Below are positions 24,879 to 63,567 of a DNA stretch of 64,000 bases, piece by piece (within the stretch, counting starts at the first letter, position 1; the number at the start of each line of letters is the position of its first letter). The notes beneath the pieces are model-generated. The model did no database searches. It was given only the letters and a program-made list of their open reading frames with translations, and was not told where the DNA came from. A program made the translations under genes and the position numbers. The stretch lies in NCBI GenBank assembly GCA_024704765.1, contig JAKMXF010000110.1, positions 62,001-126,000 of the forward strand, in the 5' to 3' direction. Origin of the DNA: Oopsacas minuta (taxonomy: Eukaryota; Animalia; Porifera).

Positions 24879-25865
24879 TTAAAAAGAGGATTGAAATGAA
24901 GTAGTTTCTTGGAATTTTTCAAACCATGGATGAGATAAAACTTTTTCTAAAGAACATCTATCGTCAGGATTAGATTTCAACAGCGCATTAATAAGATCTC
25001 GAGCCTCAGTTGATATCGCTGGTTCTTCAGACGATATCTTATATCTAGCATTTTGTATATTATCATACATCAGTTGAGTTAATGGATTATAATTGATTTC
25101 TGAGAAGAATGGTGTTTCGCCCAACAATAAGCAATACAATACTACACCAAGAGACCATATATCACATCTATGATCATAGGGAGCTAAATCCATAGAAGTG
25201 GGATATGGATTGTACTGTCTGTCTTTGCATAGTACTTCTGGTGCTACGTAATAGGGCGTGTACTCTACACGGGTAGGACGAGATTTCTCCTGGCAAGAAA
25301 ATCCAAAATCTGACAGTTTAGCACACAACTCCTTATCTTCTCCCTCAGATAGCAATATGTTCTCTGGTTTAAGATCTTTGTGGATAATTCCTTGTTTGTG
25401 TAAACTCTGTAAACCATACACAACTTGTTTCATCAGGTGGACAGCTGTCTCCTCTCTCACTCCACCATGACACTTGATGAATTGGAACAGGTTCCCTTCT
25501 CCCTGTAGCTCCATCACGATGTACAAGTACTTTACACCTGGTTTACTACCTGGATGATGTCCTACACATCTAAACACGTCTATTATAGGAACTACATTTT
25601 CTGAATTACGAAATTTTCTTTGTAAATTAACCTCTTCTCTACTACGTTTGTTATCTTCCAATATTTTGAGTGCATATTTATATCCTAAGAAACGTGAAGC
25701 ACACATGTAGGTACCCCCAGATATACCACTCCCAATTCTGCTCCAAATCAGCTCATAATCCTGTGAGATATCAGTTGAGAGAATCTCATCTTCCCCACTG
25801 CTAGAACCTTCAGAATCACTTCTTGTTTTCGATATTTTACGGATGAATCTACCAATTTTAGCCAT
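24879..25865 (-). CDS. Intronless MAPKAPK-like kinase, 328 aa (ATG at 25865)
   Basis: GSGISG, YALK, HKDLKPEN, DFG, YTPYYVAPE, HPW. The track starts at a TTG; the first ATG is two codons in. Confidence 0.9.
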   Translation of the reverse strand: MAKIGRFIRKISKTRSDSEGSSSGEDEILSTDISQDYELIWSRIGSGISGGTYMCASRFLGYKYALKILEDNKRSREEVNLQRKFRNSENVVPIIDVFRCVGHHPGSKPGVKYLYIVMELQGEGNLFQFIKCHGGVREETAVHLMKQVVYGLQSLHKQGIIHKDLKPENILLSEGEDKELCAKLSDFGFSCQEKSRPTRVEYTPYYVAPEVLCKDRQYNPYPTSMDLAPYDHRCDIWSLGVVLYCLLLGETPFFSEINYNPLTQLMYDNIQNARYKISSEEPAISTEARDLINALLKSNPDDRCSLEKVLSHPWFEKFQETTSFQSSF

Positions 25866-28139
25866 TAACAATATTCAGCTTTATTCATGTTACAGAAAGT
25901 ACACCAATTAGACTATAATATATACTATTCTGTAGACTTGCTTCATATTTCAGTATTACCAGTGATATAATCAACAAGTTATAATTATAGTAACACTTCA
26001 ACTAAATAATTAATAATAATTATAGTAGCACTATTCGTTTGAAGTGATTCTAAGAATTTGTGAATAGGGTCGGTTTCATAGGAGCACTTACCACGTATAT
26101 TTAAAAATAAATACGTACCTATTGTACTCGTCAGCAACAACAATAATAAATAAATAATAATATACTCTTATTAATAAAGAGGCTGGTTTTCAACATAAGA
26201 TAGATTCTCCTTTATTTTCCGACACAATGTTCGAGAAAGAAAATTCGGCCATGCGGTTATAAGAAAGTAATTCTTATATTAACTGAATAAGGGAGGGAAA
26301 TGTGTGCTTTATGACGTCATAAGGTGCTAAAATCTGGTTTTTGGTGCGGGAATTGTTTCAAACGAAGTGGTAAAATTTTAGCGTTCCCTTTCATTACGAG
26401 CGTAAAACTCCTACAGTAATCTGTTAATGGTGAAAGTCTATACATACTAAGTAGATATCATCAATGAAATTATCATATCAGTTGGAGGTATACAGTTGAT
26501 AAAACATAATACCCCTGTATTGAAACATTAATAGAGTAATATAATATAGAGAAGAGCGTGATTACTGTGAGTTCATTGCAAGAAATGCAGTATTTGAATA
26601 ATTCTAGGAATTGCCCATATTTCTATTATTAACCATTTAGGGAATGTACACCATCAGGTGTAGGGCGGGATCAAATGAACTTTAGTGCTACGTTCTCACA
26701 ACAACAGTGAATTCAAATATAATATAGACAAATATTATGCATGTATATACCCCAATATACGCAGGTGTTGGGTATTGGCAAAATATGAGTAGCTAATTAT
26801 AGCTAGAGACGTGGAGGAAGTTATTTTAATATTAATTATGTATATATTTATATGAGTGAGTAAGATTAATATTAACAGTTATATTATCACAATTAGCCTG
26901 ATGGCAAGTAATCATTGCGAAAATTCTATATATATTTCGGGTGGGAATTGAAATAACATTAAACATCACATGAGTTAACATTAAACGTAAAATGATATTC
27001 TAGCCAGAATTCCTAGGCTAGTTTTACAAAATAAATAAATGAATAAGAAAGTAATCTATTATACATTGTGAATACGGATTAATTAGTAAAAATTTCAATT
27101 TTCAGTAGGAATATCAATACTAAGAAGTGCTGGGTGGATACAAATCATATTCCAAATCTACTCAATAATTCATTTCCCATACAAACATAATCCATAGCCA
27201 TAGCCATTTGGAATACGAATATTAAAATCATATCCAAGAAAAATCCATGAAATTCATACATTTCATGGATCTGATGGATTTCTTTGGACTTTAGAGAATC
27301 CAAATCCATATTCCATAATCAATCCGGCCCCTTTGTCTATACTCTATATTAGAAAGGCGACACTCGCATAATAATTTTGTCTGAATGAAAAGGCAATTTT
27401 AGAGGATTATTATTATACATATCATTTAGGGGTTTTTAACTCTCAAGCTAGGGTGTTATTTAGAGATATTTAAGCAATCTGGCCTAGATTGCTAGGTTCC
27501 TCTAGCGAACTATTTAGTCACGTAATTACAATATATGTAGATTGCAAGTAATGTATTTGAAACAAGTACGGATATGAAAAGTGTTACTAAGAAAGAATGT
27601 TAATATAATGGTTACTGTAATCTGTTGTATGTACACCAGCCAAAAAGGTTGTAGAATGTAGATTATAAATTATCAGAAAACTCTCAAGTGTCAACAACAT
27701 CTTCTTAAGGAAATTTTTAATCGAGCGGATACATTAGTCATAATTTCCATGTAATCATTACGCATGGGATCTAAAATGACCTCAGGTTAGTGGATGTACT
27801 AGTATTCATGGGTCAAATTTGACCCCGGTAAAGTTGGAATTTGTCCTTCAGTACACTCAAAGCACAAGATATACCTCCCATTGTGTTATAATAATTAGTA
27901 TTAATCATCATCAGGTAAAAATATAAAATTATATTACGAATAATATATAATTCTAGTTATATAAAAATATAGAAACATCACAAAATATATGTCAATATAA
28001 TGGCAATATAGCACACAGAATATTATGAAAATCGAGTTTCAGTCTTACGTAGCACGTTTAGTTACAATCTATAGCACAGGCCAGTTACGTATAAATACGA
28101 GATAAGACAGACTACAGTTAAGAAGTTAAACAAACTGAA

Positions 28140-29096
28140 ATGGAACAAGTTATATCTATGCTAAGAACGATAAATCCTAATTTCTTTACGAAAAATGAGT
28201 TTAAATCTCAAAATATCATCCAAGAAATAGATTCCAGAACACAATATGACTTAGTACAATCTTCTCCATTAGGAAATGGCGCGACAGGCGTAGTATACAG
28301 ATGCATTTGTAAAGAAACGAATAAGATATATGCACTGAAAATAGTTCGGGATAACAAGGATGGTTTGAACGAAATTGTACTACAAAGAAGATGTAATTCA
28401 GAAAATGTAGTTCCTATAATAGACGTGTTTAGATGTGTAGGACATCATCCAGGTAGTAAACCAGGTGTAAAGTACTTGTACATCGTGATGGAGCTACAGA
28501 GAGAAGGGAACCTGTTCCAATTCATCAAGTGTCATGGTGGAGTGAGAGAGGAGACAGCTGTCCACCTGATGAAACAAGTTGTGTATGGTTTACAGAGTTT
28601 ACACAAACAAGGAATTATTCACAAAGATCTTAAACCAGAGAACATATTGCTATCTGAGGGAGAAGATAAGGAGTTGTGTGCTAAACTGTCAGATTTTGGA
28701 TTTTCTTGCCAGGAGAAATCTCATCCTACCCGTGTAGAGTACACGCCCTATTACGTAGCACCAGAAGTACTATGCAAAGACAGACAGTACAATCCATATC
28801 CCACCTCTATGGATTTAGCTCCCTATGATCATAGATGTGATATATGGGGATTAGGAGTAACTATATACACTCTGTTAACGGGAATCACGCCATTCTACTC
28901 AGAGATAAACGGAAGAGTAATGACACCCATCATGTACGATAATATACAAAACGCGAGGTATAAATTCCCAGAATATCAATGGAGAGGAATTTCAACAAAT
29001 GCAAAAGATCTAATTTCAAAACTACTCATAACTGACCCAAAAGACAGACTTACTCTACGACAAATACTAAAACACCCTTGGGTGCTTGAAAATTAA
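28140..29096 (+). CDS. Intronless MAPKAPK-like kinase, 318 aa
   Basis: GNGATG, YALK, HKDLKPEN, DFG, YTPYYVAPE, HPW. GTATAAATA at 28089 upstream. Head-to-head with kinase 25865. Confidence 0.92.
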   Translation: MEQVISMLRTINPNFFTKNEFKSQNIIQEIDSRTQYDLVQSSPLGNGATGVVYRCICKETNKIYALKIVRDNKDGLNEIVLQRRCNSENVVPIIDVFRCVGHHPGSKPGVKYLYIVMELQREGNLFQFIKCHGGVREETAVHLMKQVVYGLQSLHKQGIIHKDLKPENILLSEGEDKELCAKLSDFGFSCQEKSHPTRVEYTPYYVAPEVLCKDRQYNPYPTSMDLAPYDHRCDIWGLGVTIYTLLTGITPFYSEINGRVMTPIMYDNIQNARYKFPEYQWRGISTNAKDLISKLLITDPKDRLTLRQILKHPWVLEN

Positions 29097-29901
29097 TAAT
29101 GTATATTATAATTTCTTTCATTTTCATTTTACTGAATTTCACAATCATTTTTTTTCTAAAGAACCCACAAATTGACACATTCATTAAATCAATTAAAATG
29201 CTTAAACATGTTAAATATCAAAATAAAGATATCAGGGAGAATAAGTAAGGTAAATATATGAACGCTTAAGGGTTATTAAGAATGTGAAAAACTAACAAAT
29301 CGTACCGAAATCCAATAAGCAATAATATATGAAGTTTTGGAATATGCTAATTAGTGAATCAATTAGGAAATATATTAAGTTTTAGATAATAATTGGTAAT
29401 ATTTAACCAAAAGAGAACACAATTAAAATGAATTAAGAGAATCACAAGTATTTTCAATATCAAGAAATATAAAATTAGATAACTAGATATACTAGTGGCT
29501 ATAAAATTCATTGAAAATGGTAAAGAAATATGAATTATGTAAACAGTCATAAAGTATCCAAATGCTAGTAATGGTACTTCAAAATGTACGTATATCTGCA
29601 AAGCAAGGGTCGGTAGTTCTCAACCTAACATTATATAGCTCAAATTACAGTGTGATCGGCTGCTCGTCTATTAGCAATATTTGCCTTAGTTTTTATCAGA
29701 GACTTTAGTAATTAGGGAAATTCGTGAAAGATACTACTTGTAATAGGCAAATTCTACTGTATTCATATTCTAGATTTTTAAAAAATCCAGAGAATTTCTA
29801 ACGGTAAAACCTTTTAAATAATTGTGAAAATAGGAGAAATTATTCGCAGGTTGGAACAATATAATATCACACTTGTAAACTCAGAATAAATAAGTTCTAA
29901 C

Positions 29902-32900
29902 CTGTTTAGCAGATGGTCTTCTCTTAGCATGAGTAATACTCTCTGCTAGAGGAATATTAAGATGATGTGAAGGAGTAGTTATTTGCCAGAAATCACGAGA
30001 TAGTTCAATAGATAGAGGATCTATCCCATAGAGAGAGCTCACCAAGAGCATAAAATTCTGTTCATCCTGTAATACAAATATCTCATATTCTCAGAAAAAT
30101 GTGTAAGTAGCTTATCTCATGTAATTAGATATATTTAGATGTAGTTTATGAATTTCATGCAGATTCTCAGGATTAAGAAGTGTAAGCATATGATATTATA
30201 ATAAACATGGAGATAAGAATTAAGAATCATGTGATGTTGGTACTTGGTACATTTACTACGGATCCCACTGAATCCGGTGTATTTCTAGCGCGGGAAGAAG
30301 TTAATAATCGGCGAGGCGTTATACTCATAGAATACACCACCTACTCCGGTACACCCCCTCTCCCATTCCAACACAGATTCTTATTCCTCAACAAAATTCT
30401 CTCAATGCAATATTCGGACTATTTTGAACAGTAATTTAGACGAAAAGCTATAATATAAACTATCTTTTTCTATCCAAAATATAGTAAGTATACTAAATAC
30501 ACGGGTAGAGTATACCTTAATTTGCATATTGACAATATATGAAGTAACCAGTTGATGCAGTTTCCTAACATAAATCTCTTCGCTATGAAAACATTCAGAA
30601 GCAATAACACTGTCGGTTAAAAACCTGAATACACCCAAATTAATGGCAGCATCTGTCAATGCTTCATCACTCTCTACTTCCTGCAGATCTATACAAGAAT
30701 AGAATAAATTTAGAATCTTGTATGTACTAATTAACCACATAATACAGGTTCACTACAACTACAACACAACACCATATACAGTCTTGATTACAGAGTATAA
30801 TGTAAATCAACTACAGTCTATTTCTAATTAAGCAAAGCCAACTATACTGCAAAATGCTTTACACACAGCAGATAATATAGTCGGTTTAAACTTTTTTATT
30901 GACTCACACTCACTAGAACAAAATTTCAATAATTAACTGGTGGACAGAGGAAAGTTGACTAGAAAGACACTAATCGACTGAAAAATAACAAACATGCAGA
31001 ACTTCACCAAAAGACGGACAAAGAATGAAAGCCAACAATTTATATTGAAATACAAATCTACAAGTTAAGCTAAGTACCACTAAATGGAGATGCTGTAGCA
31101 CATATCCTAAGGAGCTGTCCCCAAGCAAATAAGACACAACCCTTCAACTCTTTGCATTTCCATTCCCTGTCCTTCATAAGTTCTTCAGTAACATCAGGAA
31201 TGAAGGTAGGATCAGATAGAATAGGATACGTGTCATTTAGAGTTAATTCATCTCCTATATGTATAACAGGAAATAATCTGTAATAATTAACTATTCAAAT
31301 TACCATTAAAATTCTATAAGTTAATCACTTAGGAATTAAAAGGACCAATTATTGGAGAATTTGTTTGTAATTAATAAGATAATATGAGGTATCGATCAGC
31401 TGTTAATATAAAGTGTTATGCATTGGAGTAGAGTGAAGGGAAAATGCGGTATTGTAGAAATGAGAATAATATATTAGTTGTAATTACGAATTAGTACATT
31501 AAGTAATGAGTAAATTTACCATTTCTGCTCTCGTATTACATAATAACTATTTAATATAATATGTATTAGATTACACTTTACGCACTAGTTTTGTAAACTA
31601 GCAGTGGAACTCGACAGGGAGTTGTACTAACAAAACTGTCGTGGATCTGTAATTTGCAAATTGATGACAAACAACATATACGTTGCCTATAGTGTTTCCT
31701 TATACCGAAGTAAAAAGGATTTTCTGTTTATTTTGAGTTCGGGTACAAGATGTTAAATGTTATACATATACCCACGCATATCGAGAAATCTCACCAATTA
31801 ATGGAAAACAACCCAAAAATAGCTTAGTTCATAATATTTCAATATTGGACTATATAATTAAAGATATTTTTAGCATTCTGAGAGATAATAATACTCAGGT
31901 GCTAGTAGTTTCATTTTGACTATTTGTACATAAAAATAGCAATAAAACTGCAGAATTTAACCTTACCGAGTAGTAAGTAGTAGTCATACCTGGTAGATAA
32001 TAGATTTCTATAATATACTTGCGAATCAAACAATTGTCCACATGGTGAGTAATGAAATTTCATAGCAAACCAATTAAGCAACAGCTTGATTACGACGAAT
32101 TGTAATTATTTCATAAACAAAATACTCAGAAGAATCCTGAATTTCTAGAAATTGATAAAGTCAGCTTGGGTTGGGATGTATATTACATTCTACAGTTAAA
32201 TCAACACCAATTTAATAATTCTAACTAGTGGAACAGTCCTTCAACTTGATAATGATTAATTCATTTACAAACCAAAACAAACATTAATTAGAATATTATT
32301 TGAATAAATTACAGACTTAAATGTAATAGACAAGTGATAAGCTTACCTCCCCCGTTCATTGTGCAGCTTTTGGTTGTAAGTCTAGTCAGTAGAATATTTA
32401 AGATAATTATAGAGAATCAGATGTCTCATCAATATACTACTTACATGTCTATTATGGTGAATGTAAGAGCAGACAAATCGCTGTATTTTAGTGGGACATT
32501 GACTGTTTTAAACGACGTAGCATTTTAGTATGCTTCTCTAAACAAAATTCCAAAATGGAGACTATAGCAAATCGTATTCCGCACGAATTTTCCTTGCTAA
32601 AAACGCGAATTTGCTATTAGAGGAATCGAATTATTTCCAATACAAAATAGACTATAAGTTCCAGAAAAACTCGTGACTATGCGACCTACACGATTTCAAG
32701 TGGGTTCACAAAATGCCAGATTTTGTTTTTTGTATAAATTAAATAAATACAAATTTAGCTTGTCCCAGGAAAACTATCATATTATAACCGTAGTAACAAT
32801 ATGTAATTAATCTATATCAAGGGAGTTAACATAGCAATCCCCTGCATTATACTCTCAAGTTTGCTGATCTAATTTTCAATAAATGAATGTTGACATTAAT

Positions 32901-34193
32901 ACATTTGGATGTAATACATTAGAATAATGTTCATAGATTCTTAAAATAATCGCTGTGTATTTACACATTTATAATCAAACTGTCTACTCACACTAAAAAA
33001 TGAATAACCAGATCTAAAGCTTCCAGTAAATGTACACTGAGATTCTCACCTGATTCATTTTCAAACAAATGTCCTACATCAATACTAGTTATGAAACTAA
33101 ACAAAATAGATAGAGTAACACCATCTAGAACACCATCTCCTCTGGTTTGTATCGAGTCTCTCAAGAACTTTATGAGTTCCAAACAATTCTTCTTACTAAG
33201 AGGTTCCTGACATGACAGAGTGAATAGACAATCTGATAATATCTGTCTCTGATCAGAAATAAGATAACTAAGTAGAGATCTGTGTTTCTGATCTCCTACT
33301 CCCCCTCCTTTCTCTAATCTAGTCAATTCATTCTGTACATCTATCTTACGTAGCTGATCAAATATCTGTTTAACTAATTCTCTATCAATTAGTGTGCTAA
33401 TATAATGCTGTGTGAATCTATCTACTTCTTCTGGTAGAGAGATAGACCATGATTGTCCTATCATAATTGCATAAGATTATCCATTATTCATAAATTCGAG
33501 TCATATTGAATTACTAGGCAACAATATATTTTGTTAGACTTAATCTATTTCGAGATTTACAGTATAATCTTGAAAATACTAACCAGTTACGTAATATGAA
33601 ACTCAATAAGTATTAAGTACAAAGTCGACAGCCCCTTGGTATCCGTACATCGTGGTAATGAAAGTCTAAATCAATTATGTGACCTTAATAATTTTGAATT
33701 TTGTGTTTGAAAGTCCCTACAATAATACCAGAATTTGACAGTACAGATATCTCTGAATTTGGTTATTTTAACAAACAAATATCACAGATTCAATCCACAA
33801 TTCTAATTTCGTTGATATAATTAGTTGTTTGTTACGTATACAAGCCAAATCATGGAGTTATCCTTCACAAACATATATTACCCAGTGTATCGGTTAAATA
33901 CCTTGCTTAGCTTGTAGTATAGTTTTAAGTGCTGTAAGGAGAGATCTCCTACCATCATGATATAACACAGTAGCAACTAAACCACGAGTCCAATTAGGAT
34001 ATCTACTAGCTTGATCCTCTCCCACTAATAATAGTTCTAACGAACTGAACTCGTTCAAATCTAATACATCTGATAGTAGCAATACTTCTTGTACTAAGCG
34101 AGCAGGTAGCTTCTTAGGAGGAGATGTAGGGGATAGAATTGTGCCTTCATTAGGGCCCTTGTTTAGCTCTGCTCTATGTTTAGCATTTGGTTT
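29902..34193 (-). CDS. NUP205: Nucleoporin NUP205, N-terminal part only; exons 34193-33902, 33457-33050, 31254-31078, 30688-30516, 30066-29902
   Basis: Exon translations match the NUP205 N-terminus (LLLSDVLDLNEFSSLELLLVGE...TRGLVATVLYHDG; EWKCKELKGCVLFAWG; EEIYVRKLHQLV; RRPSAKQ). GT-AG ends and splice phases are consistent. First exon and downstream exons not found. Confidence 0.8.
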
Positions 34194-36494
34194 CTAGAGG
34201 AATGACTTTATTGAAATTTATCGGTTATGCGTTTCATTGTTCTGTAAAACATTAAATTTAGTAGAATCTTTGTTACATTATACTGGACCTGTGGAAACGG
34301 TCAGGAGGTCTGGTCGTCGCGAAAATATCGCTTAATCAATTCAAATTTAATTTCGCCAGGCTTGAAATATAATGAATGAATTTTCAGCTAATTGTTTACC
34401 AAAAATATTCAATTTTAATTCTGCCCAAAATACGCATACTTCCTGTTAAATCATTAACTTCTACTCAATACAATTGAATAGTACTTTCCCTAATTAATAA
34501 CTAATAATAGCCTTCACATTTGTGTGTTTTGCTGTTAGTTTTGTTGCTTTAGCAGTTGTACAATAATGGACAAAAAACCCGATTTTAATACTAAACTAAT
34601 CATGTGGGTACAATATTCTAGAAACTGCTAAAATCATAATTTACTACTTCCAAGTGGCCTATGTAATGATATGTAATATTAATATAGCAGTAATAATTAT
34701 AGAGAACAAGCAAAACAACGGCAAATCTTATGTGATAATAGTTATAGAAAAACAACTTGAATGCTATTATTTTGATAAAAATACATAACAAATATTCAAA
34801 ATACTGAAGGACAATACAATACGGAATAAATCTTGTCTACTAAGTATAATATCGAAAGTAATTATAGACATTAATAACAAGAAAATTGCTGTATCAAGTT
34901 AACTAAGCAGAGTTAAGTTGCTAGAAATGTGTGTAAATTTAGAATGGTGGCTAATTATATTATCATAATAATGTTGATGTACTTGGAATTACGATTAGCT
35001 TGAAATAAGCTCTAAAAGTTGACAAAGTACACTTATAACCAGTAAGAAATACATCGTATTATTATTAGAGTTCAATTATGGTTAAACTTACAGGGAATAT
35101 GAGAAGGCTTGTAAAATTATTCGTATGTTGTTTCAGCAGATCTTGATATTCACGAATAAGATCACATCTCTTGTGATATATTGTGTACTGAATTGTTGTG
35201 AGAAGCTCTTTGAAAGGAGACCAAAAGGCGTTTGTGAAATCTACAAAGTATAGGGAATGTCATGATGATCAAAATTACATTTGATATTAGTAATTATAAA
35301 TGAACTCTGCAATGACTGTGAGTTAATAAAATTACGAATAGTATTGCAATAATAAAATTCCAAAAGAAAATGATATGTAGCTTTTATTGTAAAGTTTAGG
35401 ATTTTAGAGTAAGCAAAATAATCCCCAAATACGATAAAATATTATATTGCAATAAAATAACAATTGCGTCGATTCACTTGAAAAATTTGGGGTTTTCACC
35501 AGAGTTTTATAAACAACAAAAAATAATTAATGTGATGAACTTATACTAGAACAATATTAAAACTGGATAATACCTAATGGATTGGTGATATGAGATTAAT
35601 GTCATTTGGTATATTAGGAGGGTAACAAATAGAAATAGCGTATTTCCCTGTTCATACACTTATTTTCCAGCACAAAACTTATCGCATATTTGAGGAATTA
35701 AAGAAATAATACATTGTATTAATTACTATGGATAATTTACAATCAGGCCCTTTCGTTAGTATCTATACAGTGAACTATGGATATCATCAGAGAATTCGGG
35801 TATAATTAACAGCATTTATGTAATGAAAAAAAACTGGATTAGTTATAGACTTACCCATTTTCCACTTTTGAAGATATTTGGTTATTGTTAGTAACTTGTT
35901 AACAATCAATCTACAAATTAAATAATAGAAAATAGAATTAAATCATGAAAAAGATTCCTGTATCTCTATAGGAATGAATATTTTAATCGTAGCTTTGCGA
36001 TAGCCCTGTAACAAACTAAAACAGATTTGCACTACAGCTGGGGTTACGATAAATATTAGGGGTTTCTAACCAACAACCTATTAGTGACGAGAACCATGGT
36101 GTTGCTGTGGGATTTGTATGTAGCAACCTAGGTTGCTGATTAGAAACTCTGAAATATAAACAATCTAATGCAAAATATGCAATTACAATTGTAAATTGCA
36201 AGTGCATGCCTACTATATCTGTACAGTCAACTCTTGTTATATCGGAATATTCGCTTATATTGAAGTCTAAAATTGTATAAATGTGGTCACAAACCTTCAA
36301 ATTAACATACTGTATATCATTGGTTATATCGAAGCAATTATAGCGATCCCTTCACTTTCGATATAACGGGAAATTACTATACTCTGATATTATCATTATA
36401 AATTACTCATGAGAGAGTATTTGAAATAATACGTATTCGAAGTGTGAAGTAACATTTATAATAGAATTTAATAGAAATTACTAAAACAACATAA

Positions 36495-38135: not shown

Positions 38136-38347
38136 TTATGGCAATTAAGCTGTAGTAATGAGATATAAGATCATTGTATAACTGTAGTAGGAAATTAACT
38201 AGTAATTCCTCTTATAATAATAAATGCAGTAAAAGGTACGGGGCTATTCTCCTTGTCGTACTAATAAACCTAGGTATTAATAATATTGACTAAAGAATTA
38301 ATACATTAGTATACTTCTAGAATATTCCTAACAATAACTATTCCTCA

Positions 38348-39611: not shown

Positions 39612-40364
<753 letters not shown>

Positions 40365-40604
40365 TCATACTATATGTAGCTATATTATGTATGCTGGAGG
40401 CATTTGTTACATTATTTGATACACTATTTTAGTTTGAAACTGGGTCAAACAAGTAATAGTTAGCTCTTTATGACCCTAGCTACGTCCCTTGACTAGTTTC
40501 AGGCAACTTATGCAGAAAATTATTAAACCTAAAACTTTTTGCATACATGGCCTTACGCTATCATTTCAATACTACGGGCTTGTAACGATAACACAAATCG
40601 TATA

Positions 40605-41187: not shown

Positions 41188-42391
41188 TTAATTGACTTTC
41201 TTGAATAAGTCATAGAGTAGATCAATTGGTAGAGGGAATATATATGTGTGATTCTTCTCTCCAGCAACCAGATTGAGAGTTTGTAAGAATCTCAGTTGTA
41301 GAGCTCCGGGTGCATCTTCTAGAATGGTAGCTGCTTCTCTCAGGTTCTTAGAGGCCTCCCACTCACCATTAGCCATTATAGCTTTAGCTTTAGCTTCTCT
41401 TGTAGCTTCAGCTTCTGCAGCCATTGCTCTCTTCATGTCATAAGGAATGCTAATATCCTTCATCTCCACACTCTCAACCTGAACAAACAGAGATTAATGC
41501 TAATAATAGTAATAAATTCATACAGTCAATTCTTGATATAGGAGGATAGAATGACTGGCTAATTCTTTGATCGGCTAAAAGAGAATATACATTCTCTTCC
41601 ATAAAGTTCTACTACAGTCAATTCCCGTTTCATCGAATACGAATGTATATCTAAGTCAAAAATTGCAGAATTATAATCCCAAATAAAAGTACAAAGTAAG
41701 TAACATATATATCATCGGAGTAATATAGCGGAGAGTTGACTATATTAAATTCTGGATATGAACGAAGTAAATATAATTAGAGTCATAAAATTTTACACAC
41801 TTATCAAATAATTAAACTCACCTTGATCCCCCATGGGTCAGTAGCCTCATCAAGAATAGAACTTAACTCATCTCCCAGCTTTTCTCTATCAGTAAGGATC
41901 TGGAACATAGTTTTAGATCCTAACACACTCCTGAGGGTGCTCTGAGCTAGTAATGTAGTAGAAGAATGTGGATTAGCCACGTTAATGACAGACAAATATG
42001 GATTAAATATGCGATAGAATACCACTGCGTTAACGTTTGCGTTAACTGAATCCTTAGTGAGAATTTCTTGCGAGGGGACATCAATCACATGGGTACGTAG
42101 GTCAATTTGTTTCTTAGAATCCACCCACGGGAGGGTGAACACAAACCCTGGACCCTGTGCTCTCTTGCTGACGATACGTCCCTGTCTGAATATGATAGCT
42201 CTCTCGTATTCCTTCAGTACTGATAGAGAGCTTATCATTGTTAGAGGGAAGAATGCAATGAATATTATCCAACCTACAATAGTGAAGAATCTACTGGACC
42301 CTGTTAGCTTTATATCTCGGAATTCATTATCATATTGTGATTCAGGAGATCTGTCTACACTGACTGGAGCGATGGGCTCGTTTTCTGCCAT
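41188..42391 (-). CDS. STOM: Stomatin (SPFH/band 7), 286 aa; exons 42391-41822 and 41478-41188
   Basis: EYERAIIFRQG, GPGFVFTLP, QEILTKDSV, PWGIK|VESVEMKD, RAMAAEAEA, LQLRFLQTL. Confidence 0.93.
41615..41742. mobile_element. pogo-like MITE in the stomatin intron
   Basis: cagtcaattccc ... gagagttgacta with TA flanks. The family is also at 7426-7566, about 46645-46729 and 51594-51663. Confidence 0.5.
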
Positions 42392-43156: not shown

Positions 43157-43816
<660 letters not shown>

Positions 43817-53184: not shown

Positions 53185-54057
53185 TTATAAATCATGAACA
53201 TTACATTTGATATAAGAAGCAGATAACAAATAACCAGTATGAGACGGCATACACAGTCTAGGAACTACACTAAGTACATGTCTCTCTTCTCTCTTATCAG
53301 TACTCTCATCTAACCTAGCTTCTGTAATTCTACAAGAACTAACTTGTAATTGCTGAGACAAACACTCATGCATTTGTATATCAATAAACCCAGATTCCCG
53401 TAGAGCAATACAGCTCTTCTGTATCTGCTCTACACAGGGGGAGAATGATACTATACGGCTGTACCCGGGACTGAAGCTCTTGGGACAATGTGGAATAACT
53501 TCCCAAGGGTTAGGAAGATCTAAGAATATAGCAGTAACATAATTCTCTACATTGAATCCCTCTCTACACACATCTCTACATTGACATGTTACTAGCTCAC
53601 TCAATCCGTGAGCTGTAAACTCATCATTAGCTTGTTGTACTCGTTCTGCATGGAAATCATATGTGTACAGATGTCCTGTAGGAGCTATTGTACGAGCTAT
53701 AGCATGAGATAGGGAGCCTGAGCCTGTCCCGCTCTCACATACAGAAGTACCAGGGATAAGTTCTAGCAGACTGGTAATGAGACTAATGTTAGGGGTGTAT
53801 AGGATTTGTGTCCTGTGGGGGAGGGAGAGTGTCCAAAGTTCAGGAGTGGGGTGTAGCGCCCACCTGTATGTTTTACCTTTGTTAGACCACATTTTACTAC
53901 CGTATTCTTTACCTAGCATGTCTGAATGTAGAAACACTCCATTACGGGATTGTACTGATTCTCCAGGCTGTACAGTTATTGATTGTAGTCCGTCCTGATC
54001 AGACAGTATTACTGTATCATTCAGTTTTATCTTAGATTTATAACCCTTACTATTCAT
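53185..54057 (-). CDS. TRMT61A: tRNA (adenine58-N1)-methyltransferase catalytic subunit, 290 aa
   Basis: LHPTPELWTLSLPHRTQILY, ESGTGSGS, GHLYTYDFH, IFLDLPNPW, SFSPCVEQ, HTGYL. Confidence 0.96.
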   Translation of the reverse strand: MNSKGYKSKIKLNDTVILSDQDGLQSITVQPGESVQSRNGVFLHSDMLGKEYGSKMWSNKGKTYRWALHPTPELWTLSLPHRTQILYTPNISLITSLLELIPGTSVCESGTGSGSLSHAIARTIAPTGHLYTYDFHAERVQQANDEFTAHGLSELVTCQCRDVCREGFNVENYVTAIFLDLPNPWEVIPHCPKSFSPGYSRIVSFSPCVEQIQKSCIALRESGFIDIQMHECLSQQLQVSSCRITEARLDESTDKREERHVLSVVPRLCMPSHTGYLLSASYIKCNVHDL

Positions 54058-54979
54058 ACTAAATTATATACACGTTATAATTAATACTAGTGTCTGGGGC
54101 AATATATGGATTCAGGCGCGGACATCCATTGCAAACTGGTACAGCGGAATATTTTATAATATCTAAAATTGCGGGATAAAATAATACAAAATGGACCGTG
54201 ATTATTTATGCCTCATTATTCCCCTGTTCTTCTACATAATTTGCATTTCAATAAGCGGACACAATATAAATATCCTTTGCATCAATTTTCTTTACTGGCA
54301 TTGCGTGACAAAGCTCATACAAACGGGAGAACAGTTCGAAAAGTTGTACGACGCTCGCGGCCCCCTGTGATTTTTAAAGGGTAACCGGATATTAAAGTAC
54401 AATGGGCATTGCTAGAAGAACACGGTTTATAAGAACATATCGACTATAAGAACCATCATACTATATCACGTGTCCCCTCCCAATACAGTTCAAATAGATA
54501 AGCCATTTTAATGCCAGGGTTTCTCAGCCTGTGGTCATATAATCAAACTTAGCCAAATAGATATTTACGTCATTACTTTTGGTCAAATTAAATATATATA
54601 GCCTTTAACAAAACTTGAACAAACTTCAAAACCTGAATAAGCAAGTTGATCTGGGTGTGGTCATGATACAAATTTCATACAAAGAGTGGCCATATTCGAG
54701 AGTTTGAGAAACTATGAATTATAATCCATAGAAAACCATCCAAACAGTGATATTGAATACTGATGCTAAAACACACACACACACCTAGTGATAGTGTCCG
54801 GGATTATTCCTAGTGAATAGCAATTAACCTATCTCTTATTATACAAATAAGAATTCTAGAACAGTATATAGTGATAAACGCAGTGAATATATATCTGCAT
54901 TGAATGATACAATTGTGTACACCAGTCTAGATAGTAGAATTACATTCAAAGTATCTATAAATGTGAATATATTTCTAAT

Positions 54980-55687
54980 CTATATATTCTTATTATGCCA
55001 CAAATCAAGGTACTCATTGTGTGTGACACGACACTTCTCTGTCTGGTATCTTGTCAGAGAGATTGAGTCTAAGATCGGTTGGGTAACAGCACCCTTAAGG
55101 CCCCCTTTCTTCAGGAGAGAGTTTATAGTTTCTATCCTGTCCCACCCTTGTTCCAGAGCTACTTCAGGGAGGTAAGTAGCTTTCCTTTTCTTCTTGAAAC
55201 CATCAAAGAATTCTATCGTTATCCCGTGTACACCTATTTCCCAGTCATAACAGTCCCCGCCCGGAGTAAAGTTAGTCAATAGAGACACAGAACATTCAAG
55301 TTTGTGTACTTCAGCTAGTGTTACTGGATGGAAACGGTTGTCTTCCATGGAAGATTTTATGCAGTAGTCTCTGAGGCCTTTGTGTAGAGGAAGGGGGTCA
55401 AATGTACCAATACAGCCTCGTAGTTTCCCTTCATGTCCTATCTTCCATGTAACAAACAGTGGAAATGATGCATCAGTAAATGAAGGGATATATCCAACAT
55501 CTTGTTTATACAGATATGCGATTAAAACATCAAAACAGAAGTAGCACATGTCAGATGAAATGACAGAATTTTGTGGTAGGATTCGTTCGATATGGTTGGG
55601 TAAGGGAGAAGCGCCTTCTATTTCACATTCCTTTACGCCTATTTGGCTGTGATTAGATAATGATTCTTGCTGCATGTGTACGTGCAT
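54980..55687 (-). CDS. AMMECR1: AMMECR1 family protein, 235 aa
   Basis: CYFCFDVL, PLFVTW, LRGCIGTF, DNRFHPV, ATYLPEVA. Confidence 0.95.
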   Translation of the reverse strand: MHVHMQQESLSNHSQIGVKECEIEGASPLPNHIERILPQNSVISSDMCYFCFDVLIAYLYKQDVGYIPSFTDASFPLFVTWKIGHEGKLRGCIGTFDPLPLHKGLRDYCIKSSMEDNRFHPVTLAEVHKLECSVSLLTNFTPGGDCYDWEIGVHGITIEFFDGFKKKRKATYLPEVALEQGWDRIETINSLLKKGGLKGAVTQPILDSISLTRYQTEKCRVTHNEYLDLWHNKNI

Positions 55688-57243
55688 GTAATGTAGGTGT
55701 GTATGTGCTTAGTGAGATAGTAAGATATTAGCCATAAGAAAACGCATAAGCTCTAAGAATCATATCATTATGTAAATTAGGAGGCTAATAAACTCTTATA
55801 GGAGGTGTTCAAGCGTTACGTAACATGAAGTGCGGTCTTAGTATCTAGCAGACCCGTGGCCAGGCCGAGCACAAAACCTCAACACAGTGTAAATGCTCCG
55901 TTCCCTCCTAGGACAGCCAATGAGCAACACTCATATCAAATTTCCGGGATGTGAATTGACGTGACATAATAGGCAGTATGAATAGACTGGGAATAGTTTT
56001 GGGTGGACAGACACTCACTACAACTAAATTTACAAGTTATATGCTACATCTATGGCTGGATACTCGAGTGTGTATGTACTCAGCTTCAACAAATCTAAGA
56101 ATTGTAATAATATACCAGACAGGCATCTTCAAATCGAAACATGCATAACATTCTAATTACCTGAAAACATTATAAGAGTAAGACCAGTTTCCCTCCAAAA
56201 TATTGAAAATATAGATTATATTACAGTTTATTTATAACTCATGTATTTTGACAAGCTGTACATTGTTAATTTGTTACTATACACGTAGATATTATTGCAA
56301 GGTTTACAGTTTTGGAGACAGTAGAATTATAGAAGTTTTATATATGAACATGTTGTTTAGAACAAGTCAAAATACCTTATGCAGTGATTGGAGTTTCTTG
56401 ATATTCTTCTACCTCCCAAGGCCTCACTATCAATATCAGTGATTACGATATCTGAAATTATGCACCATAATGAATATATGAGGAACGGTATGTCAGTAGC
56501 CGTAGGGCAGTGCTCGAGAATTTATTCCTATTAGTCACCAAAATCCTGAAGTTGGTGGCTTAGTTAAGCCACAAAAAATTTAATAGTGAGGAAGTAAAAA
56601 TGAAAATGTGACTGTGTTAATGCATGAGTCTCACTCACTTTGGATCCGTGGGACTTAACAACTATGCTTTTAGGAAGTAGGTCAGATCATCTGACTTATA
56701 TTCTTAGCATTTGATTAATCATATTTTTCACCATCTGGGAAAATTCAAAATAATTATGATTCAGATTTGTAATGGACACGAGCTGCCTCGGTAAATCGAA
56801 TGGCATTACTTAGTATTTCTCATAAAATTAGCTCACCAAAATATTGAAACAATTCGACATAATGGTTTGTATATTTCCCTCTGTATAATGTATTTATTTA
56901 TATTTACTATTAATGGAATTAATTATTATCTGCTTAAGTAATTATATGGCATTATTCGTATTACTTCATTGACGACACATTTCACTGAAAAGATCTAATC
57001 AAGAAATGTTCAGCCTTACCAAAGCTTACATAAATATCTCGCTCATATTAGTAGAAATTATGTATAATTATTATATACCAGTTTAAGGTTTAATCATTTT
57101 TGGAAACTGTCCCTCTGTGTGTGTGCAATAATCTATTTATTTTATGAATTACATGTAAATTACTGTTTATGGCATCTAAATCTTATAGATAGTACTTAAA
57201 GCGAAATGTTCTGTATGTAGTGTAGAAATTCCATTCATTTAAA

Positions 57244-58370
57244 ATGACTTATAGTTACATTCAAGTTGATATAATTGGGAATGCAATGCCTTGCATAAGT
57301 ATTACTTTTATCAGTTTAATTTGGATAATTGTGATATCTAAAAAAATGATACAAAATGTTAAAAATTATAAATTGAATAAGGAAAGGTTTTTCGCCAATG
57401 AAATATATAGAAAAAGAATTCTATACAATCTTGAGACACATATTGTGAAGGACATTTTCTTATTAATTTTAATTGTATTGGAATTAATAGAACCTCTATC
57501 TGGATTGATACATATACTTTCTACACTACATCATTATCCATGGTATCTGAATATGAAAATGAACATGACCAAAGTAGAAGATTGTTCTGACGGAAAAGCT
57601 TTCAAATTATTCCTAGCAAATAGTCATTGCAGTGAGTTCTGTAATTTCTTTGACATAATATATTATTGTCTGCTCATGATTGGAATATGTATTTCATAAC
57701 AATACTAAGCATGCTATGTCGCTATCTAGCTGCTAGATACTTCAAACACCCCGTTAACAAGATTATGAAGAAGTACATTGTATGGTTATGTGTACAAATA
57801 GTTGTATTTACTCCTGGTTTCAGTAAATACACGCTGGGATTGATTCTGATAATTTCACCATTTATCATGCTAACAGATTGGGTATTACTGTATAGAGACT
57901 ATAAAGTGCTAAGAAATGTACTCAAATCTCACATGAAAGAGTTACAACTGCATTTCAGTAGGAGACTATATTTGCAGGTAAAGAAACTATATTTTACCTA
58001 CAGAATCTGTATGATGACTCTCTTAGCTTCTCTGTTGGCCTATATTATAGGAACAGTTCTGTTTAACATTCTTCGCATGATGTCTGCCGTGCTAACCAAC
58101 AGCTGTATTTTATCACTAATCAACACGAATAATCACACTTATCAATCGCAGATAATCTACCAAATGGGAAGTACAATTTTACAGGACGGCATTCGTGTAT
58201 TTATAGCCATACATTTTGCACTGTTAATTCTCCCGCTACATATAGCTACCTTTATAGCTTTGATATGCAAATTAGTTAGGAAGTGCAGAGGAGTGAATAA
58301 AAAGTATATACGCTATAATTACGAGATCATGCAGGACTTATTACAAAAACAGGAACAAAGAAGAAATTAA
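57244..58370 (+). pseudogene. Orphan 7-TM protein, paralog of 3877-5028, split by one frameshift at about 57650-57697
   Basis: Two overlapping ORFs (57244-57699, 57666-58370) together give about 7 TM segments aligning with the 383-aa protein. Confidence 0.6.
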
Positions 58371-58629
58371 ATAAATGTTTTCGCATTCTTGTTATTCCAT
58401 TATTCACAATCCATATTGCTTTTATTTCTCCTATTTTGTGCTCATCTCTTGAAATAAAGCATTAATAATTTGAATCAGTGCCTAAAAATCTGTCTTCATT
58501 AATTATTGATTAAGTATTACGATATATGCTAAAGCCCACCATACAACAAAAATTGAATTCAACATTATTGTATGAAAAAAGTTTTTGGAATTTTGAAGGC
58601 AATTTTGTTGCACTGTGTATGGTAAGGTT

Positions 58630-58770
58630 TAGCGCCTATAAAGGACAAAAATGGTGGCCGCTATAGAGAGGTCATTATATTATAAATGGGAAATCGGAGG
58701 GGCTGTTTTTAGGTGGCTGCTATGTACATGTCACCTTTATACAGAGGTGGCCGTTAAGCAGGTTTGATTG
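58630..58770. mobile_element. pogo/Tigger-like MITE fragment
   Basis: Right end gaggtggccgttaagcaggtttgattg+TA, with internal repeated ggtggccg motifs. Confidence 0.45.
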
Positions 58771-59008
58771 TATATCGCCAAAATGTGTTGCGTATTGAGA
58801 ATTTCACATACTCAATCGTCATATGTTACTTTTCACATAGTTTTCAAATTATGCTGTATCACTAGAATCGATTACTGTTTATTTTACACCACCCACATTC
58901 ATTATAGGCATACTGATAGTAGTATAAATGATTTAAACTAACCTGAATTCACATTCGTAAGTTCCTCACTTATAGCCAGCAGCTCTTCAAAGAAACATTT
59001 GGACACGA

Positions 59009-60948
59009 ATGGCATTTCGTTCAATATTACAACGCTTTTCACGTCCCTCTATCTTCAAACCTTCCAATGCTAGTTCTGTCCTACAGGCACGTGCTATCAA
59101 CTCTCAGTACCCGGAAGATAACCCTAGCTTCAGTCAGATGGTATCAGAGTATTTGAAGAAAGCTGAGGAATATATTATCAAAGATGAAATGCGTATAACA
59201 GGACATCCTAGAGAAGAGATAGTCGGTATTTTGGATACTATACGCTCTTGTAATCACGTGCTGAATGTTACCTTTCCTCTCCGTCGTGATGACGGTACAA
59301 TCATGAATATTGAAGGATGGAGAGCACAACACAGTCTACACAAAACTCCTTGTAAAGGAGGTTGTAGGTTCAGCGACGATGTAGACGAAGACGAAGTGAA
59401 AGCCTTAGCAACGCTTATGACATATAAGAATGCAACAGTAGACGTGCCGTATGGAGGAGCAAAGGCAGGAGTGAAGATAAATCCCAGAAAATTCTCAGTG
59501 GGAGAGTTGGAGAGGTTGACAAGACGTTTCGCAATTGAACTATCAAAGAAGGGCTTCTTAGGACCTGGTATTGATGTTCCTGCTCCTGACATGGGTACTG
59601 GAGAACGAGAGATGGCTTGGATAGCTGATACATATGCACATACTACTGGACATCTGGATATCAATGCACATGCGTGCATAACTGGTGAGTAGATAAATTA
59701 TTTGCAAGGTTGAAACCGCTCGAACGGAATATCATATCAGTATCCATGAATAGCATCCTTACCAATACTGATACGAATATGTATTGATAATATTCGGTTT
59801 TGATCAACTGAATACCGATACTAGATAGAACTGGTCACATTCGCCGGTACATGGGCGCAACTAGGATCGAATAGGTGGGCACTAGATTCGACTCCACCAT
59901 AATACAAAAATGTAAAGGGTGGATGGGCATGACGTCAATCTTTGCCCATCCAGACTCGAGTGCCTAGTAGCGCCTATGTATCGGCATATCGATCATGAAA
60001 TCTCCATGTTGCTAGTAATCATGACAAGTATCCCATTCAGGTAAACCAATCAGTCAGGGAGGAATACATGGACGTACTCAAGCAACAGGTCTCGGTCTAT
60101 TCTTTGCTTTAAGGAACTTCATACAAGATCCTGAATTCATGTCTTCTATAAACGTAGTGCCAGGCTTCATTGGGAAGAGCTTTATCGTACAAGGATTTGG
60201 TAATGTAGGCTTTTACATTGCTCGTTACTTACACAGAGCTGGCTGTAAATTAGTGGGAGTGATGGAGTATGACGGATCAATCTACAATAAGGAAGGAATG
60301 GATCCTGATGATATAATTGCGTACAAGAAGAAGAACAGAGGTGTATCCGGGTACTCTGGTGGTGAGTTTGTAGAGGGGTCCTTATTTGACAAGGAGTGTG
60401 ACATTCTTGTGCCATGTGCTACTGAGAAGTCTATTCATATGGGTAATGCTGACTCTATCAAAGCTAAGATAATCATAGAAGGAGCGAATGGACCTACCAC
60501 AACCAAAGCTAACGATCTACTCCTGTCTAAGAATGTCCTGATGATACCGGATATGTATGCAAATGCTGGAGGCGTTACTGTCTCGTATTTCGAATGGCTG
60601 AAGAATCTGAATCATGTCAGTTTTGGACGTATGACTATGCGTTACGAGCGTGATTCTAACTATGCTCTGTTAGACAGTGTGCAGAAGAGTTTGGAAAAGA
60701 AATTCGGTGCTACTGCAGGTTCCATTCCTATCCAACCCACTTCTCAATATCTTAGTCGTATGTCAGGAGCTGATGAAGAAACACTAGTTGAATCTGGACT
60801 GGAATACACCATGGATAGAGCAGCTGGCCATATAAAGAAGTTAGCCAAAGACTCTGGTCTTGGTTTAGATTTAAGAACAGCTTCTCTTATCTACGCAGTA
60901 GAGAAGATTTATAAGATATACAACGAAGCAGGACTCACTTATATGTAA
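59009..60948 (+). CDS. GLUD1: Mitochondrial glutamate dehydrogenase copy 1, 527 aa; exons 59009-59684 and 60041-60948
   Basis: [34 protein letters not shown]|[31 protein letters not shown]; animal antenna present. Confidence 0.97.
59850..59978. mobile_element. MITE in the GDH copy 1 intron
   Basis: TIRs catgggcgcaactagg / cctagtagcgcctatg (14/16 match) with TA flanks. Confidence 0.55.
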
Positions 60949-61259
60949 CATTTCACTTCACTCAATTAGCAATACATTACTCCGATATTTATTCATTAGT
61001 GTACATTCTTTCATTATCTGTGTTACTTGTACTTAGCAAAATTTCATGTGTACATTTTCTGTTTCAAATGAAATTCATTCGACTGTACTTTCTCTATAAG
61101 ATTCTAATTGGGCGTTTCAAGTGTTACCACAAAGTTTGTTGCATGACACATCCTGCATTGCTGCATACAAGTACATAAATATCCAAAATTAGCGAGAAAT
61201 GCAAATTACAACGATGTAATAATTATTTATACAATTTGTTATATATGTCTTGGTATGCA

Positions 61260-61408
61260 ATTACCTTCATTAGTTTATTATGGATACGTGTGTTATATGT
61301 AAATGTTCATGCCAAGATGTTAAAAATATTAAATCGAACAAGAAAAACTGCCTCAATGAAATATACAGAAAAAGAATTCTATAAAATCCTAAGACATAAA
61401 TCGTGATA
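61260..61408 (+). pseudogene. Relic of the 5' part of the 57244 7-TM gene
   Basis: Translates ITFISLLWI...DVKNIK...NEIYRKRIL* versus ITFISLIWI...NVKNYK...NEIYRKRILY; has a frameshift and stops. Confidence 0.75.
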
Positions 61409-61817
61409 ACGAGGTCTACTGTGTATGTACTGTATTGATTTAACATGTGTTATAGTGCCTCAAATCAATAGTGTCACTTTAGATAATGTCAATTAATATA
61501 ATAAGCTATCTGTACAGGTTGTAATTTAAGATTTTTCTAAGTCTTATTTCACATTTTCCTTCAAAAGAATCGAGAATCGACTATCAATTGATAATCAAAG
61601 CTCTGACAATTTAGCCTTGAAGGCACTTAATTTTGTGTAATTATTTGATCTGATCAGTTTTCTAAAGCCTACCATCAGGATGCAACTTTGTTGCATCTTG
61701 AATGCAACAAACAGCATTTTGGAAAAATTTATTATATAGTTATTCGATTACGAAGCATTTAAGAGAATAATAAGTGATAAAATAGAAACTAATAAAGTGT
61801 AAAAGAAAAATAGACAA

Positions 61818-63567
61818 CTACATATAAGTGAGTCCTGCCTCGTTGTATATCTTATAAATCTTCTCTACTGCGTAGATAAGAGAAGCTGTTCTTAAATCTA
61901 AACCAAGACCAGAGTCTTTGGCTAACTTCTTTATATGGCCAGCTGCTCTATCCATGGTGTATTCCAGTCCAGATTCAACTAGTGTTTCTTCATCAGCTCC
62001 TGACATACGACTAAGATATTGAGAAGTGGGTTGGATAGGAATGGAACCTGCAGTAGCACCGAATTTCTTTTCCAAACTCTTCTGCACACTGTCTAACAGA
62101 GCATAGTTAGAATCACGCTCGTAACGCATAGTCATACGTCCAAAACTGACATGATTCAGATTCTTCAGCCATTCGAAATACGAGACAGTAACGCCTCCAG
62201 CATTTGCATACATATCCGGTATCATCAGGACATTCTTAGACAGGAGTAGATCGTTAGCTTTGGTTGTGGTAGGTCCATTCGCTCCTTCTATGATTATCTT
62301 AGCTTTGATAGAGTCAGCATTACCCATATGAATAGACTTCTCAGTAGCACATGGCACAAGAATGTCACACTCCTTGTCAAATAAGGACCCCTCTACAAAC
62401 TCACCACCAGAGTACCCGGATACACCTCTGTTCTTCTTCTTGTACGCAATTATATCATCAGGATCCATTCCTTCCTTATTGTAGATTGATCCGTCATACT
62501 CCATCACTCCCACTAATTTACAGCCAGCTCTGTGTAAGTAACGAGCAATGTAAAAGCCTACATTACCAAATCCTTGTACGATAAAGCTCTTCCCAATGAA
62601 GCCTGGCACTACGTTTATAGAAGACATGAATTCAGGATCTTGTATGAAGTTCCTTAAAGCAAAGAATAGACCGAGACCTGTTGCTTGAGTACGTCCATGT
62701 ATTCCTCCCTGACTGATTGGTTTACCTGAATGGGAAAAATATAAAATTTTCAAGCTTCTAACTCTCCAGTATAAATATATCACAAATTCATACAAGGGTT
62801 TGGGAATTTGGGATATTTGAAGAGTATGTAACTATTCGGATTATTAAGCATTACCTAGAATTATACCAGTTAGCTTAAAATGGCAGTGGTAACTTACCAG
62901 TTACACACGCATGTGCATTGATATCCAGATGTCCAGTAGTATGTGCATATGTATCAGCTATCCAAGCCATCTCTCGTTCTCCAGTACCCATGTCAGGAGC
63001 AGGAACATCAATACCAGGTCCTAAGAAGCCCTTCTTTGATAGTTCAATTGCGAAACGTCTTGTCAACCTCTCCAACTCTCCCACTGAGAATTTTCTGGGA
63101 TTTATCTTCACTCCTGCCTTTGCTCCTCCATACGGCACGTCTACTGTTGCATTCTTATATGTCATAAGCGTTGCTAAGGCTTTCACTTCATCTGCATTCA
63201 CATCTTCACTGTATCTACAACCTCCTTTACAAGGAGTTTTATGATGACTATGCTGTGCTCTCCATCCTTCAATATTTATAATAGTTCCATCATCTAGACG
63301 GAGAGGAAACATAACGTTCACAACATTATTACAAGGACGTATAGCATCCAAAATACCGACTATCTCTTCTCTAGGATGTCCTGTTATACGCATTTCATCT
63401 TTGATAATATATTCCTCAGCTTTCTTCAAATACTCTGATACCATCTGACTGAAGCTAGGGTTATCTTCCGGGTTCTGAGAGCTGATGGCACGTGTTTGTA
63501 ATCTCAGATTGGAATGTCTCAGGATGGAGGGACGTGGGATATGGTAGAAAACTTTGCGTAGAGCCAT
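61818..63567 (-). CDS. GLUD1: Mitochondrial glutamate dehydrogenase copy 2, 525 aa; exons 63567-62898 and 62725-61818
   Basis: Same motifs as copy 1; 172-bp GT-AG intron at the same position; different presequence. Confidence 0.97.

Follow-up and report, generated by a model that had tools for sequence, protein, structure and literature searches.

Coding segments of three linked paralogue pairs in Oopsacas minuta bear the marks of interlocus gene conversion

Within a 64,000-nucleotide (nt) stretch of DNA from Oopsacas minuta (contig JAKMXF010000110.1), referred to here as the window, three gene families are each represented by two neighboring copies in inverted orientation: a pair of protein kinases (kinase A and kinase B), a pair of Rab6-like genes (RabA and RabB), and a pair of glutamate dehydrogenase (GDH) genes. 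The two copies in each pair share stretches of coding sequence that are identical or nearly so, silent sites included, and that end abruptly against strongly diverged sequence. We conclude, at a probability of roughly 85%, that these pairs are old linked duplicates whose coding stretches have been repeatedly overwritten by interlocus gene conversion and that such conversion proceeds in either orientation. The locus adds a well-documented case to those known for this process and reveals no new mechanism.

Repeat finding and self-BLAST of the window returned exactly four inverted matches in the interval 24879-63567 (Table 1): one in the kinases, one in the Rab genes, and one in each GDH exon. 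Pfam assigned the corresponding open reading frames (ORFs) to three families (Pkinase twice, Ras twice, and ELFV_dehydrog_N with ELFV_dehydrog twice). The kinases lie head-to-head across a 2.3-kb spacer, and the arms of the tract-bearing pairs, all of them inverted, are 0.9 to 3 kb apart. A preliminary description, made from the letters of the window alone, had reported inverted kinase (head-to-head), RAB6, and GDH (both tail-to-tail) pairs within 40 kb, with tracts of 128 to 908 bp that end abruptly; the repeat search, self-BLAST, and Pfam agreed with the arrangement, and base-by-base comparison matched the tract sizes and sharp edges. Gene ends, introns, untranslated regions (UTRs), and spacers had been called unalignable or strongly diverged, and this too was borne out: only a few bases beyond the tract edges, sliding identity is down to 35 to 60%, as for unrelated AT-rich DNA. 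One part of the earlier picture required correction, in that RabA and RabB do not form a bare palindrome; a Band_7/stomatin gene sits between them.

At base level, each tract covers a defined part of its gene. The kinase tract runs from the end of helix C through the hinge, the catalytic loop, DFG, and the activation segment with APE to just before helix F, and the glycine loop, the VAIK lysine, and everything from helix F onward lie outside it. For the kinases, the earlier idea of a shared active core with different ends is right in a descriptive sense. GDH exon 1 is a mosaic: its N-terminal part has diverged, and its two tracts are separated by 156 nt (59237-59392) that are only 80% identical. 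The GDH exon 2 tract has its start in the intron, 10 nt upstream of the acceptor AG, and its end within the stop codon (TAA versus TAG). The two GDH introns (356 versus 173 nt) are without alignable sequence, and the 869-nt spacer separating the stop codons (60949-61817; 871 nt when measured between the repeat arms) is unalignable as well. On either side of each tract, the copies are still homologous and their proteins stay in register, such that complete kinase, Rab, and GDH domains are encoded with no insertion or deletion at any edge.

Silent sites separate the tracts sharply from the remainder of each gene. Synonymous divergence (dS, Nei-Gojobori estimates) between the kinases was 0.021 in the core tract versus >2 in both ends, and that between the Rab genes was 0.04 in the tract versus 1.09 in the rest of the gene. 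Along GDH exon 1, successive segments gave dS values of 1.16 (N terminus), 0 (tract), 0.97 (middle), and 0.015 (tract); the value for GDH exon 2 was 0.005, which refers to the whole exon, with no outside segment. In a Sawyer-type runs test (Sawyer/GENECONV logic) applied to sites variable among species, the kinase, Rab, and GDH exon 1 tracts were each significant at p <= 1e-4, while GDH exon 2 tested alone gave p = 0.045 because the whole exon is tract.

For comparison with relatives, we used unannotated long-contig assemblies in the European Nucleotide Archive, in which orthologues are 60 to 87% identical to the window genes and from which syntenic loci were recovered in four samples: S1 (ERZ25072730; L001, L005-L007, L009), S2 (ERZ25072740; L002/L003, L010/L011), S3 (ERZ25071281; L004, L012), and S4 (ERZ20067936; L008). 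S1 and S2 yielded two long contigs per locus (L002 versus L003, L005 versus L006, and L010 versus L011) that are 1.5 to 3.4% apart and are probably haplotypes. The head-to-head kinase pair adjoins Nup192-like and Mpp10 genes in both S1 and S2, with kinase A orthologues present in L001, L002, and L003; kinase B orthologues, found in four relatives, show 63 to 73% amino acid identity. S3 contributed only a kinase B orthologue, with no kinase A within 4.4 kb before the contig end (L004/L012). The tail-to-tail GDH pair adjoins AMMECR1 and gene X, which encodes a 371-amino-acid (aa) membrane protein, in S1 (L005, L006), and S4 carries a single GDH in a different gene neighborhood. Over codons that are identical between the window paralogues, the orthologues in these relatives have dS values from 1.2 to saturation. 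For the Rab tract codons, dS between orthologues was 1.2 to 1.8, and comparison with the S2 orthologue gave a nonsynonymous divergence of 0 beside a dS of 1.46. Purifying selection on protein, codon usage, or RNA was therefore ruled out as the cause of the identity, since constraint at the codon or RNA level cannot explain identity at codons whose silent sites are this diverged between orthologues.

The kinases provided the clearest comparison across species. Nucleotide identities were taken by segment (N-terminal/core/C-terminal) from a codon alignment, with W denoting the window. Paralogues within a genome were alike in the core and dissimilar elsewhere (43%/99%/53% for W_A versus W_B, 42%/91%/55% for S1_A versus S1_B, and 45%/88-90%/55% for A versus B in S2). 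Orthologues showed a far flatter profile (71%/about 74%/65% for W_A versus S1_A and 71%/about 81%/69% for W_B versus S3_B). In the maximum-likelihood tree of the ends, the A orthologues formed a clade (support, 100/99), and approximately unbiased (AU) tests rejected the groupings W_A+W_B (p = 1e-4) and S1_A+S1_B (p = 7e-54). In the tree of the core, the sisters were instead W_A+W_B (93/96) and S1_A+S1_B (77/98), and AU tests rejected both orthologue clades (p about 2e-5). Ends that group by orthologue and cores that group by species show that the duplicate is older than the species and that the core has been homogenized separately in each lineage. Silent sites are already saturated between the species that the kinase duplication predates. 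In three lineages, the homogenized block has its 5' edge at the same codons, just after helix C, and its 3' edge varies by about 60 nt.

GDH, which was compared exon by exon, behaves similarly. Exon 2 is 99.9% identical between the copies within the window and 92.5% identical within S1 but about 77% identical between species. The S1 exon 2 divides into a first part of 651 nt with a dS of 0.058 and a last part of 252 nt with a dS of 1.42; the latter value marks the S1 pair, too, as an old duplicate, converted over a different extent. Identity between the S1 copies of exon 1 is 98.5% over the whole exon and carries on for 16 nt of the following intron. Thus, the window has converted all of exon 2 and a mosaic of exon 1, and S1 has converted exon 1 and part of exon 2. 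Taken with the kept synteny, the kinase end and core trees, and dS values of 0 to 0.04 inside the tracts versus about 1 to saturated outside them, these results uphold the earlier view that the pairs are old duplicates held in concerted evolution by gene conversion. The suggestion that the diverged ends confer different targeting did not fare as well for GDH: by inspection, both window N termini are basic and hydroxyl rich with no acidic residues, and both look like mitochondrial presequences.

Two further features of the GDH region were recorded. Third-position G+C (GC3) in GDH exon 2 is 57 to 67% in S1 (L006 9905-10807) versus 29 to 41% in the window (60043-60945), a large shift in codon composition. 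The spacers between the GDH copies contain pieces related to gene X: in the window, a fragment at 61260-61406 is about 75% identical to gene X 57301-57448 in direct orientation, and in S1 an opposite-strand fragment (L006 11465-11587; L005 11478-11600) encodes gene X residues 326-368.

The Rab genes bear on the question of orientation. The order in S2, which has three Rab6-like genes, is Rab3(+), NHL, Band_7(+), Rab2(-), Rab1(-), L27A, Mpp10, and S1 has at least Rab2(-) and Rab1(-) as Rab6-like genes. Read in the orientation of the relatives, the window is RabB(+), Band_7(+), RabA(-), Mpp10, and both order and strands match. Exact runs shared by inverted copies reach 195 nt for RabA/RabB in the window and 219 nt for Rab1/Rab3 in S2, which lie 6 kb apart with Rab2 between them. 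By self-BLAST, Rab1 and Rab2 are direct repeats in both S1 and S2, and they share exact runs of 110 nt in S1 (97 to 100% identity over about 270 nt) and 151 nt in S2. Exact runs between Rab orthologues of different species are only 20 to 41 nt. Since direct Rab pairs carry comparable tracts, inverted orientation is not required, and homogenization is not tied to it. Rab1 of S2 (L010 7680-8243) is a chimera with a strongly diverged P-loop region and no C-terminal cysteine motif; in its middle, the DNA matches that of the canonical Rab6 (Rab3) 6 kb away without a difference.

These observations tell against the mechanism offered in the preliminary description, in which inverted arms fold back and pair within one chromatid, as Y-chromosome palindromes do, so that the geometry itself drives or strongly favors homogenization. 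That explanation has some appeal, as all three tract-bearing pairs in the window are inverted and closely spaced, and hairpins formed by close inverted repeats can provoke breaks. Nevertheless, the 110- to 151-nt exact tracts in the direct Rab1/Rab2 pairs of two relatives do not fit a process specific to inverted copies, a whole Band_7 gene lies between the window's Rab arms, and the arms are not identical lengthwise as those of true palindromes are, with identity found only in parts of the coding sequence. It had been proposed that equal homogenization of direct pairs would count against fold-back; the direct Rab pairs are indeed homogenized too, which goes part of the way, but the sample is small. 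The same description had contrasted the pairs with two unpaired kinases, at 9185 and 19264, which show no tract. We likewise saw none, with 45 to 54% identity to the pair throughout, but the contrast says little about pairing: about 50% identity is far below the threshold for homologous repair, so these genes are too diverged to act as a control for orientation. On balance, we regard orientation-specific fold-back as unlikely.

A still less likely explanation is that the copies truly differ and that a consensus built with misassigned reads has made them identical. One detail of the window is compatible with imperfect assembly, namely, a frame break of 1 nt at a short run of Ts in the neighboring gene X, which could be an assembly indel. 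On the other side, independent long-contig assemblies of three related species, including two haplotype contigs per sample, show the same genes homogenized to different extents. Isolated mismatches occur inside the tracts, the edges lie within a few bases of the breaks in homology, and older tracts of intermediate identity (80 to 94%) flank them, which polishing would not create. An artefact in the window itself is excluded only indirectly by these arguments.

We also considered whether a spliced transcript of one copy could have served, as complementary DNA (cDNA), as the repair template. GDH identity stops at exon edges and the introns differ, and a spliced message would bring the 284-nt exon 1 tract almost directly up to the 908-nt exon 2, apart from two mismatches near the end of exon 1. 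However, the identity enters introns in both lineages (over the 10 nt preceding exon 2 in the window and the 16 nt following exon 1 in S1), which indicates a DNA template and rules out cDNA-templated conversion. Moreover, a junction-spanning template should have removed the intron, the identity ends at the stop codon instead of continuing into the 3' UTR, and the kinase and Rab tracts have equally sharp edges without introns there; the likelihood of this route is accordingly minimal. Just as improbable are recent partial duplications, in which each tract would be a young gene-fragment copy that landed in an unrelated or older gene: such events are common in some compact animal genomes (PMC3966223), but the tract flanks are homologous and in register with no insertion or deletion at the edges, the same segments were homogenized independently in other species, and when a segment is replaced in register by its paralogue, the event is by definition gene conversion.

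We therefore favor repeated interlocus conversion and hypothesize that it operates as follows. A DNA break in one copy would be repaired by homology-directed repair with the nearby paralogue as the template (nonallelic conversion), the template being DNA and not cDNA. Tracts would start and extend only where the copies are still similar enough to pair as heteroduplex, so that conversion would be confined to islands (the kinase core, the Rab G-domain, and the GDH exons) and would halt where homology has already been lost, that is, at gene ends, introns, UTRs, and spacers. This confinement may be self-reinforcing, with converted islands staying similar while escaped regions drift beyond reach, and stable boundaries would result; this would explain why the kinase 5' edge falls at the same codons in three lineages. 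Selection might also contribute to holding the boundaries. Inverted orientation would at most aid persistence, because crossing-over between inverted copies deletes neither copy (PMC3924832).

Several observations weigh against this reading or limit its reach. The direct pairs that could be compared number three and all belong to one Rab family, so they cannot speak for equal rates in the two orientations. In the tree of the unconverted part of the Rab genes, W_RabA and W_RabB group together (support, 63/93), and the RabB+Rab3 clade was not rejected (p = 0.245); the age proposed for the Rab pair rests on synteny and the dS of 1.09. The haplotype contigs of S2 differ in kinase A at clustered sites, and one haplotype has the B state at alignment columns 539-592, but many of these differences could be new mutations, and as a sign of ongoing conversion they are only suggestive. 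A signature of GC-biased conversion in the kinase core is weak, with GC3 at 36% in the core versus 23 to 30% in the ends and 39% in the unconverted kinases K9 and K19. Finally, the tracts in the window are described from the assembly consensus.

Comparable systems are known from other animals. In Drosophila, the palindromic pairs Hsp70Aa/Ab, Hsp70Ba/Bb, and Amy-p/Amy-d show concerted evolution that is limited to the coding sequence, with independently evolving flanks (PMC3924832). The pairs described here resemble them as linked inverted paralogues older than the species that are more similar within than between species and have independent flanks. They differ in that only parts of the coding sequence are homogenized (the kinase core, the Rab G-domain, and the mosaic GDH exon 1) and in that the kinase ends are about as diverged as those of other family members. 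In Caenorhabditis elegans, conversion at hsp16 and col-12/13 has been reported in both orientations (PMC3924832, PMC3966223), and the parallel with Caenorhabditis extends to a compact genome, adjacent inverted and tandem duplicates (hsp16 inverted modules, col-12/col-13), tracts of a few hundred base pairs, and diverged flanks (PMC3966223). Caenorhabditis tracts often include very short introns, whereas the introns here (173 to 356 nt, and much longer in a relative) cannot be aligned and the tracts stop within 10 to 16 nt of exon edges. Human and ape Y-chromosome palindromes likewise consist of inverted repeats on one chromosome that intrachromosomal conversion keeps similar (PMC3723533; PMC3403216). 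However, their arms measure 9 kb to 1.45 Mb and are >99.9% identical lengthwise, noncoding sequence included, whereas the arms here are single genes with patchy, coding-only identity and with introns, UTRs, gene ends, and promoters that cannot be aligned. The mosaic pattern also agrees with models of divergence under conversion, which predict low-divergence islands beside escaped regions with stable boundaries (PMC3924837; bioRxiv 10.1101/2025.10.29.685298). That literature consists of models and plant or fly cases; here, a boundary is seen to be conserved in three animal lineages.

The locus thus offers a clean multispecies case of concerted evolution over the long term, from an animal lineage about which little is known: in three unrelated gene families within 40 kb, old duplicates and saturated divergence between orthologues go together with recent tracts whose edges are sharp at base level. 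A practical consequence is that converted segments in this genome need to be masked, as gene trees and dates of duplication will otherwise go badly astray: the unmasked kinase core would date the duplication as recent, and the kinase ends place it before the species splits. The conserved kinase 5' edge is a natural case in which to ask whether it is loss of homology or selection that sets such boundaries. It is conceivable, though doubtful, that the lineage carries unusually many close inverted paralogue pairs genome-wide, long-lived and with conversion limited to functional cores and boundaries conserved between species. If so, the boundaries might be held by selection in a "modular" form of concerted evolution (a shared catalytic module with free regulatory ends), or a repair pathway might favor inverted neighbors, and the convergent 917-nt GDH repeat could in addition be a source of double-stranded RNA.

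Table 1. Positions of inverted matches, identity tracts, and genes in the window
Feature	Position	Strand	Remarks
Inverted match 1, kinase	25155-25609 / 28393-28847		455 nt at 99%; extended, 523 nt at 94.5%
Inverted match 2, Rab	39731-40271 / 43238-43778		541 nt at 84%
Inverted match 3, GDH exon 1	59082-59690 / 62892-63500		609 nt at 94%
Inverted match 4, GDH exon 2	60031-60947 / 61819-62735		917 nt, 1 mismatch
Kinase tract, arm A	25155-25609	-	455 nt; 4 mismatches (25197, 25279, 25383, 25502)
Kinase tract, arm B	28393-28847	+	
Rab tract, arm A	39788-40014	+	227 nt; 1 mismatch (39983); P-loop through switch II and beta 4
Rab tract, arm B	43495-43721	-	Coordinates derived from ungapped register of the repeat match
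GDH exon 1 tracts	59109-59236, 59393-59676	+	128 nt and 284 nt; both perfect
GDH exon 2 tract	60031-60947	+	1 mismatch (60927)
Kinase A	24879-25871	-	ORF; Pkinase 5.5e-56; intronless MAPKAPK-like kinase of the CAMK group; likely ATG start 25865
Kinase B	28140-29096	+	ORF; Pkinase 3.1e-62; PDB MAPKAPK2/3 about 1e-45
RabA, divergent Rab6 paralogue	39732-40364	+	Translation; Ras family 5e-59; ORF open from 39618, likely start Met 39732
Band_7/stomatin-like gene, outside the repeat	41188-42391	-	Translation matches Band_7 gene of relative L010
RabB, canonical Rab6	43157-43777	-	PDB RAB6A 7e-102; by synteny, Rab3 of the relatives
GDH copy A, exon 1	59009-59684	+	Phase-1 donor GT at 59685
GDH copy A, exon 2	60041-60948	+	
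GDH copy B, exon 2	61818-62725	-	Tail-to-tail with copy A
GDH copy B, exon 1	62899-63567	-	Presequence 6 nt shorter than that of copy A

The window is AT-rich (29 to 39% G+C) eukaryotic DNA with long exons. In protein word searches, the best named matches were from animals (37 to 40% for the MAPKAPK-like kinases, 54 to 60% for GDH, and about 40% for Mpp10, the last from hemichordates and other bilaterians). Rfam and tRNA scans of the window gave no match, and an exact-product look-up of the window GDH exon 2 ORF matched no record. Gene X (57244-58370, +) encodes a multipass membrane protein without a Pfam match; its frame changes near 57693, where 1 nt is missing in the short T run, and in S1 it is a single 371-aa ORF (L006 2027-3142), so the window copy is either a pseudogene or the product of an assembly insertion/deletion error.

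Minor features were seen in the relatives and elsewhere in the window. In S3, three copies of a 380-aa ORF without a Pfam match lie upstream of Mpp10 (L012 1-1120, 3600-4742, and 7122-8264), in the place taken by the Rab and Band_7 genes in the window and the other relatives. In S4, coding sequence within a 407-aa ORF adjoining the single GDH forms a long tandem array of 12-nt period (L008 6785-7994). The window also contains a 31-nt perfect inverted repeat (15681-15711 / 15902-15932) with a 190-nt spacer, which may represent the ends of a small transposable element.

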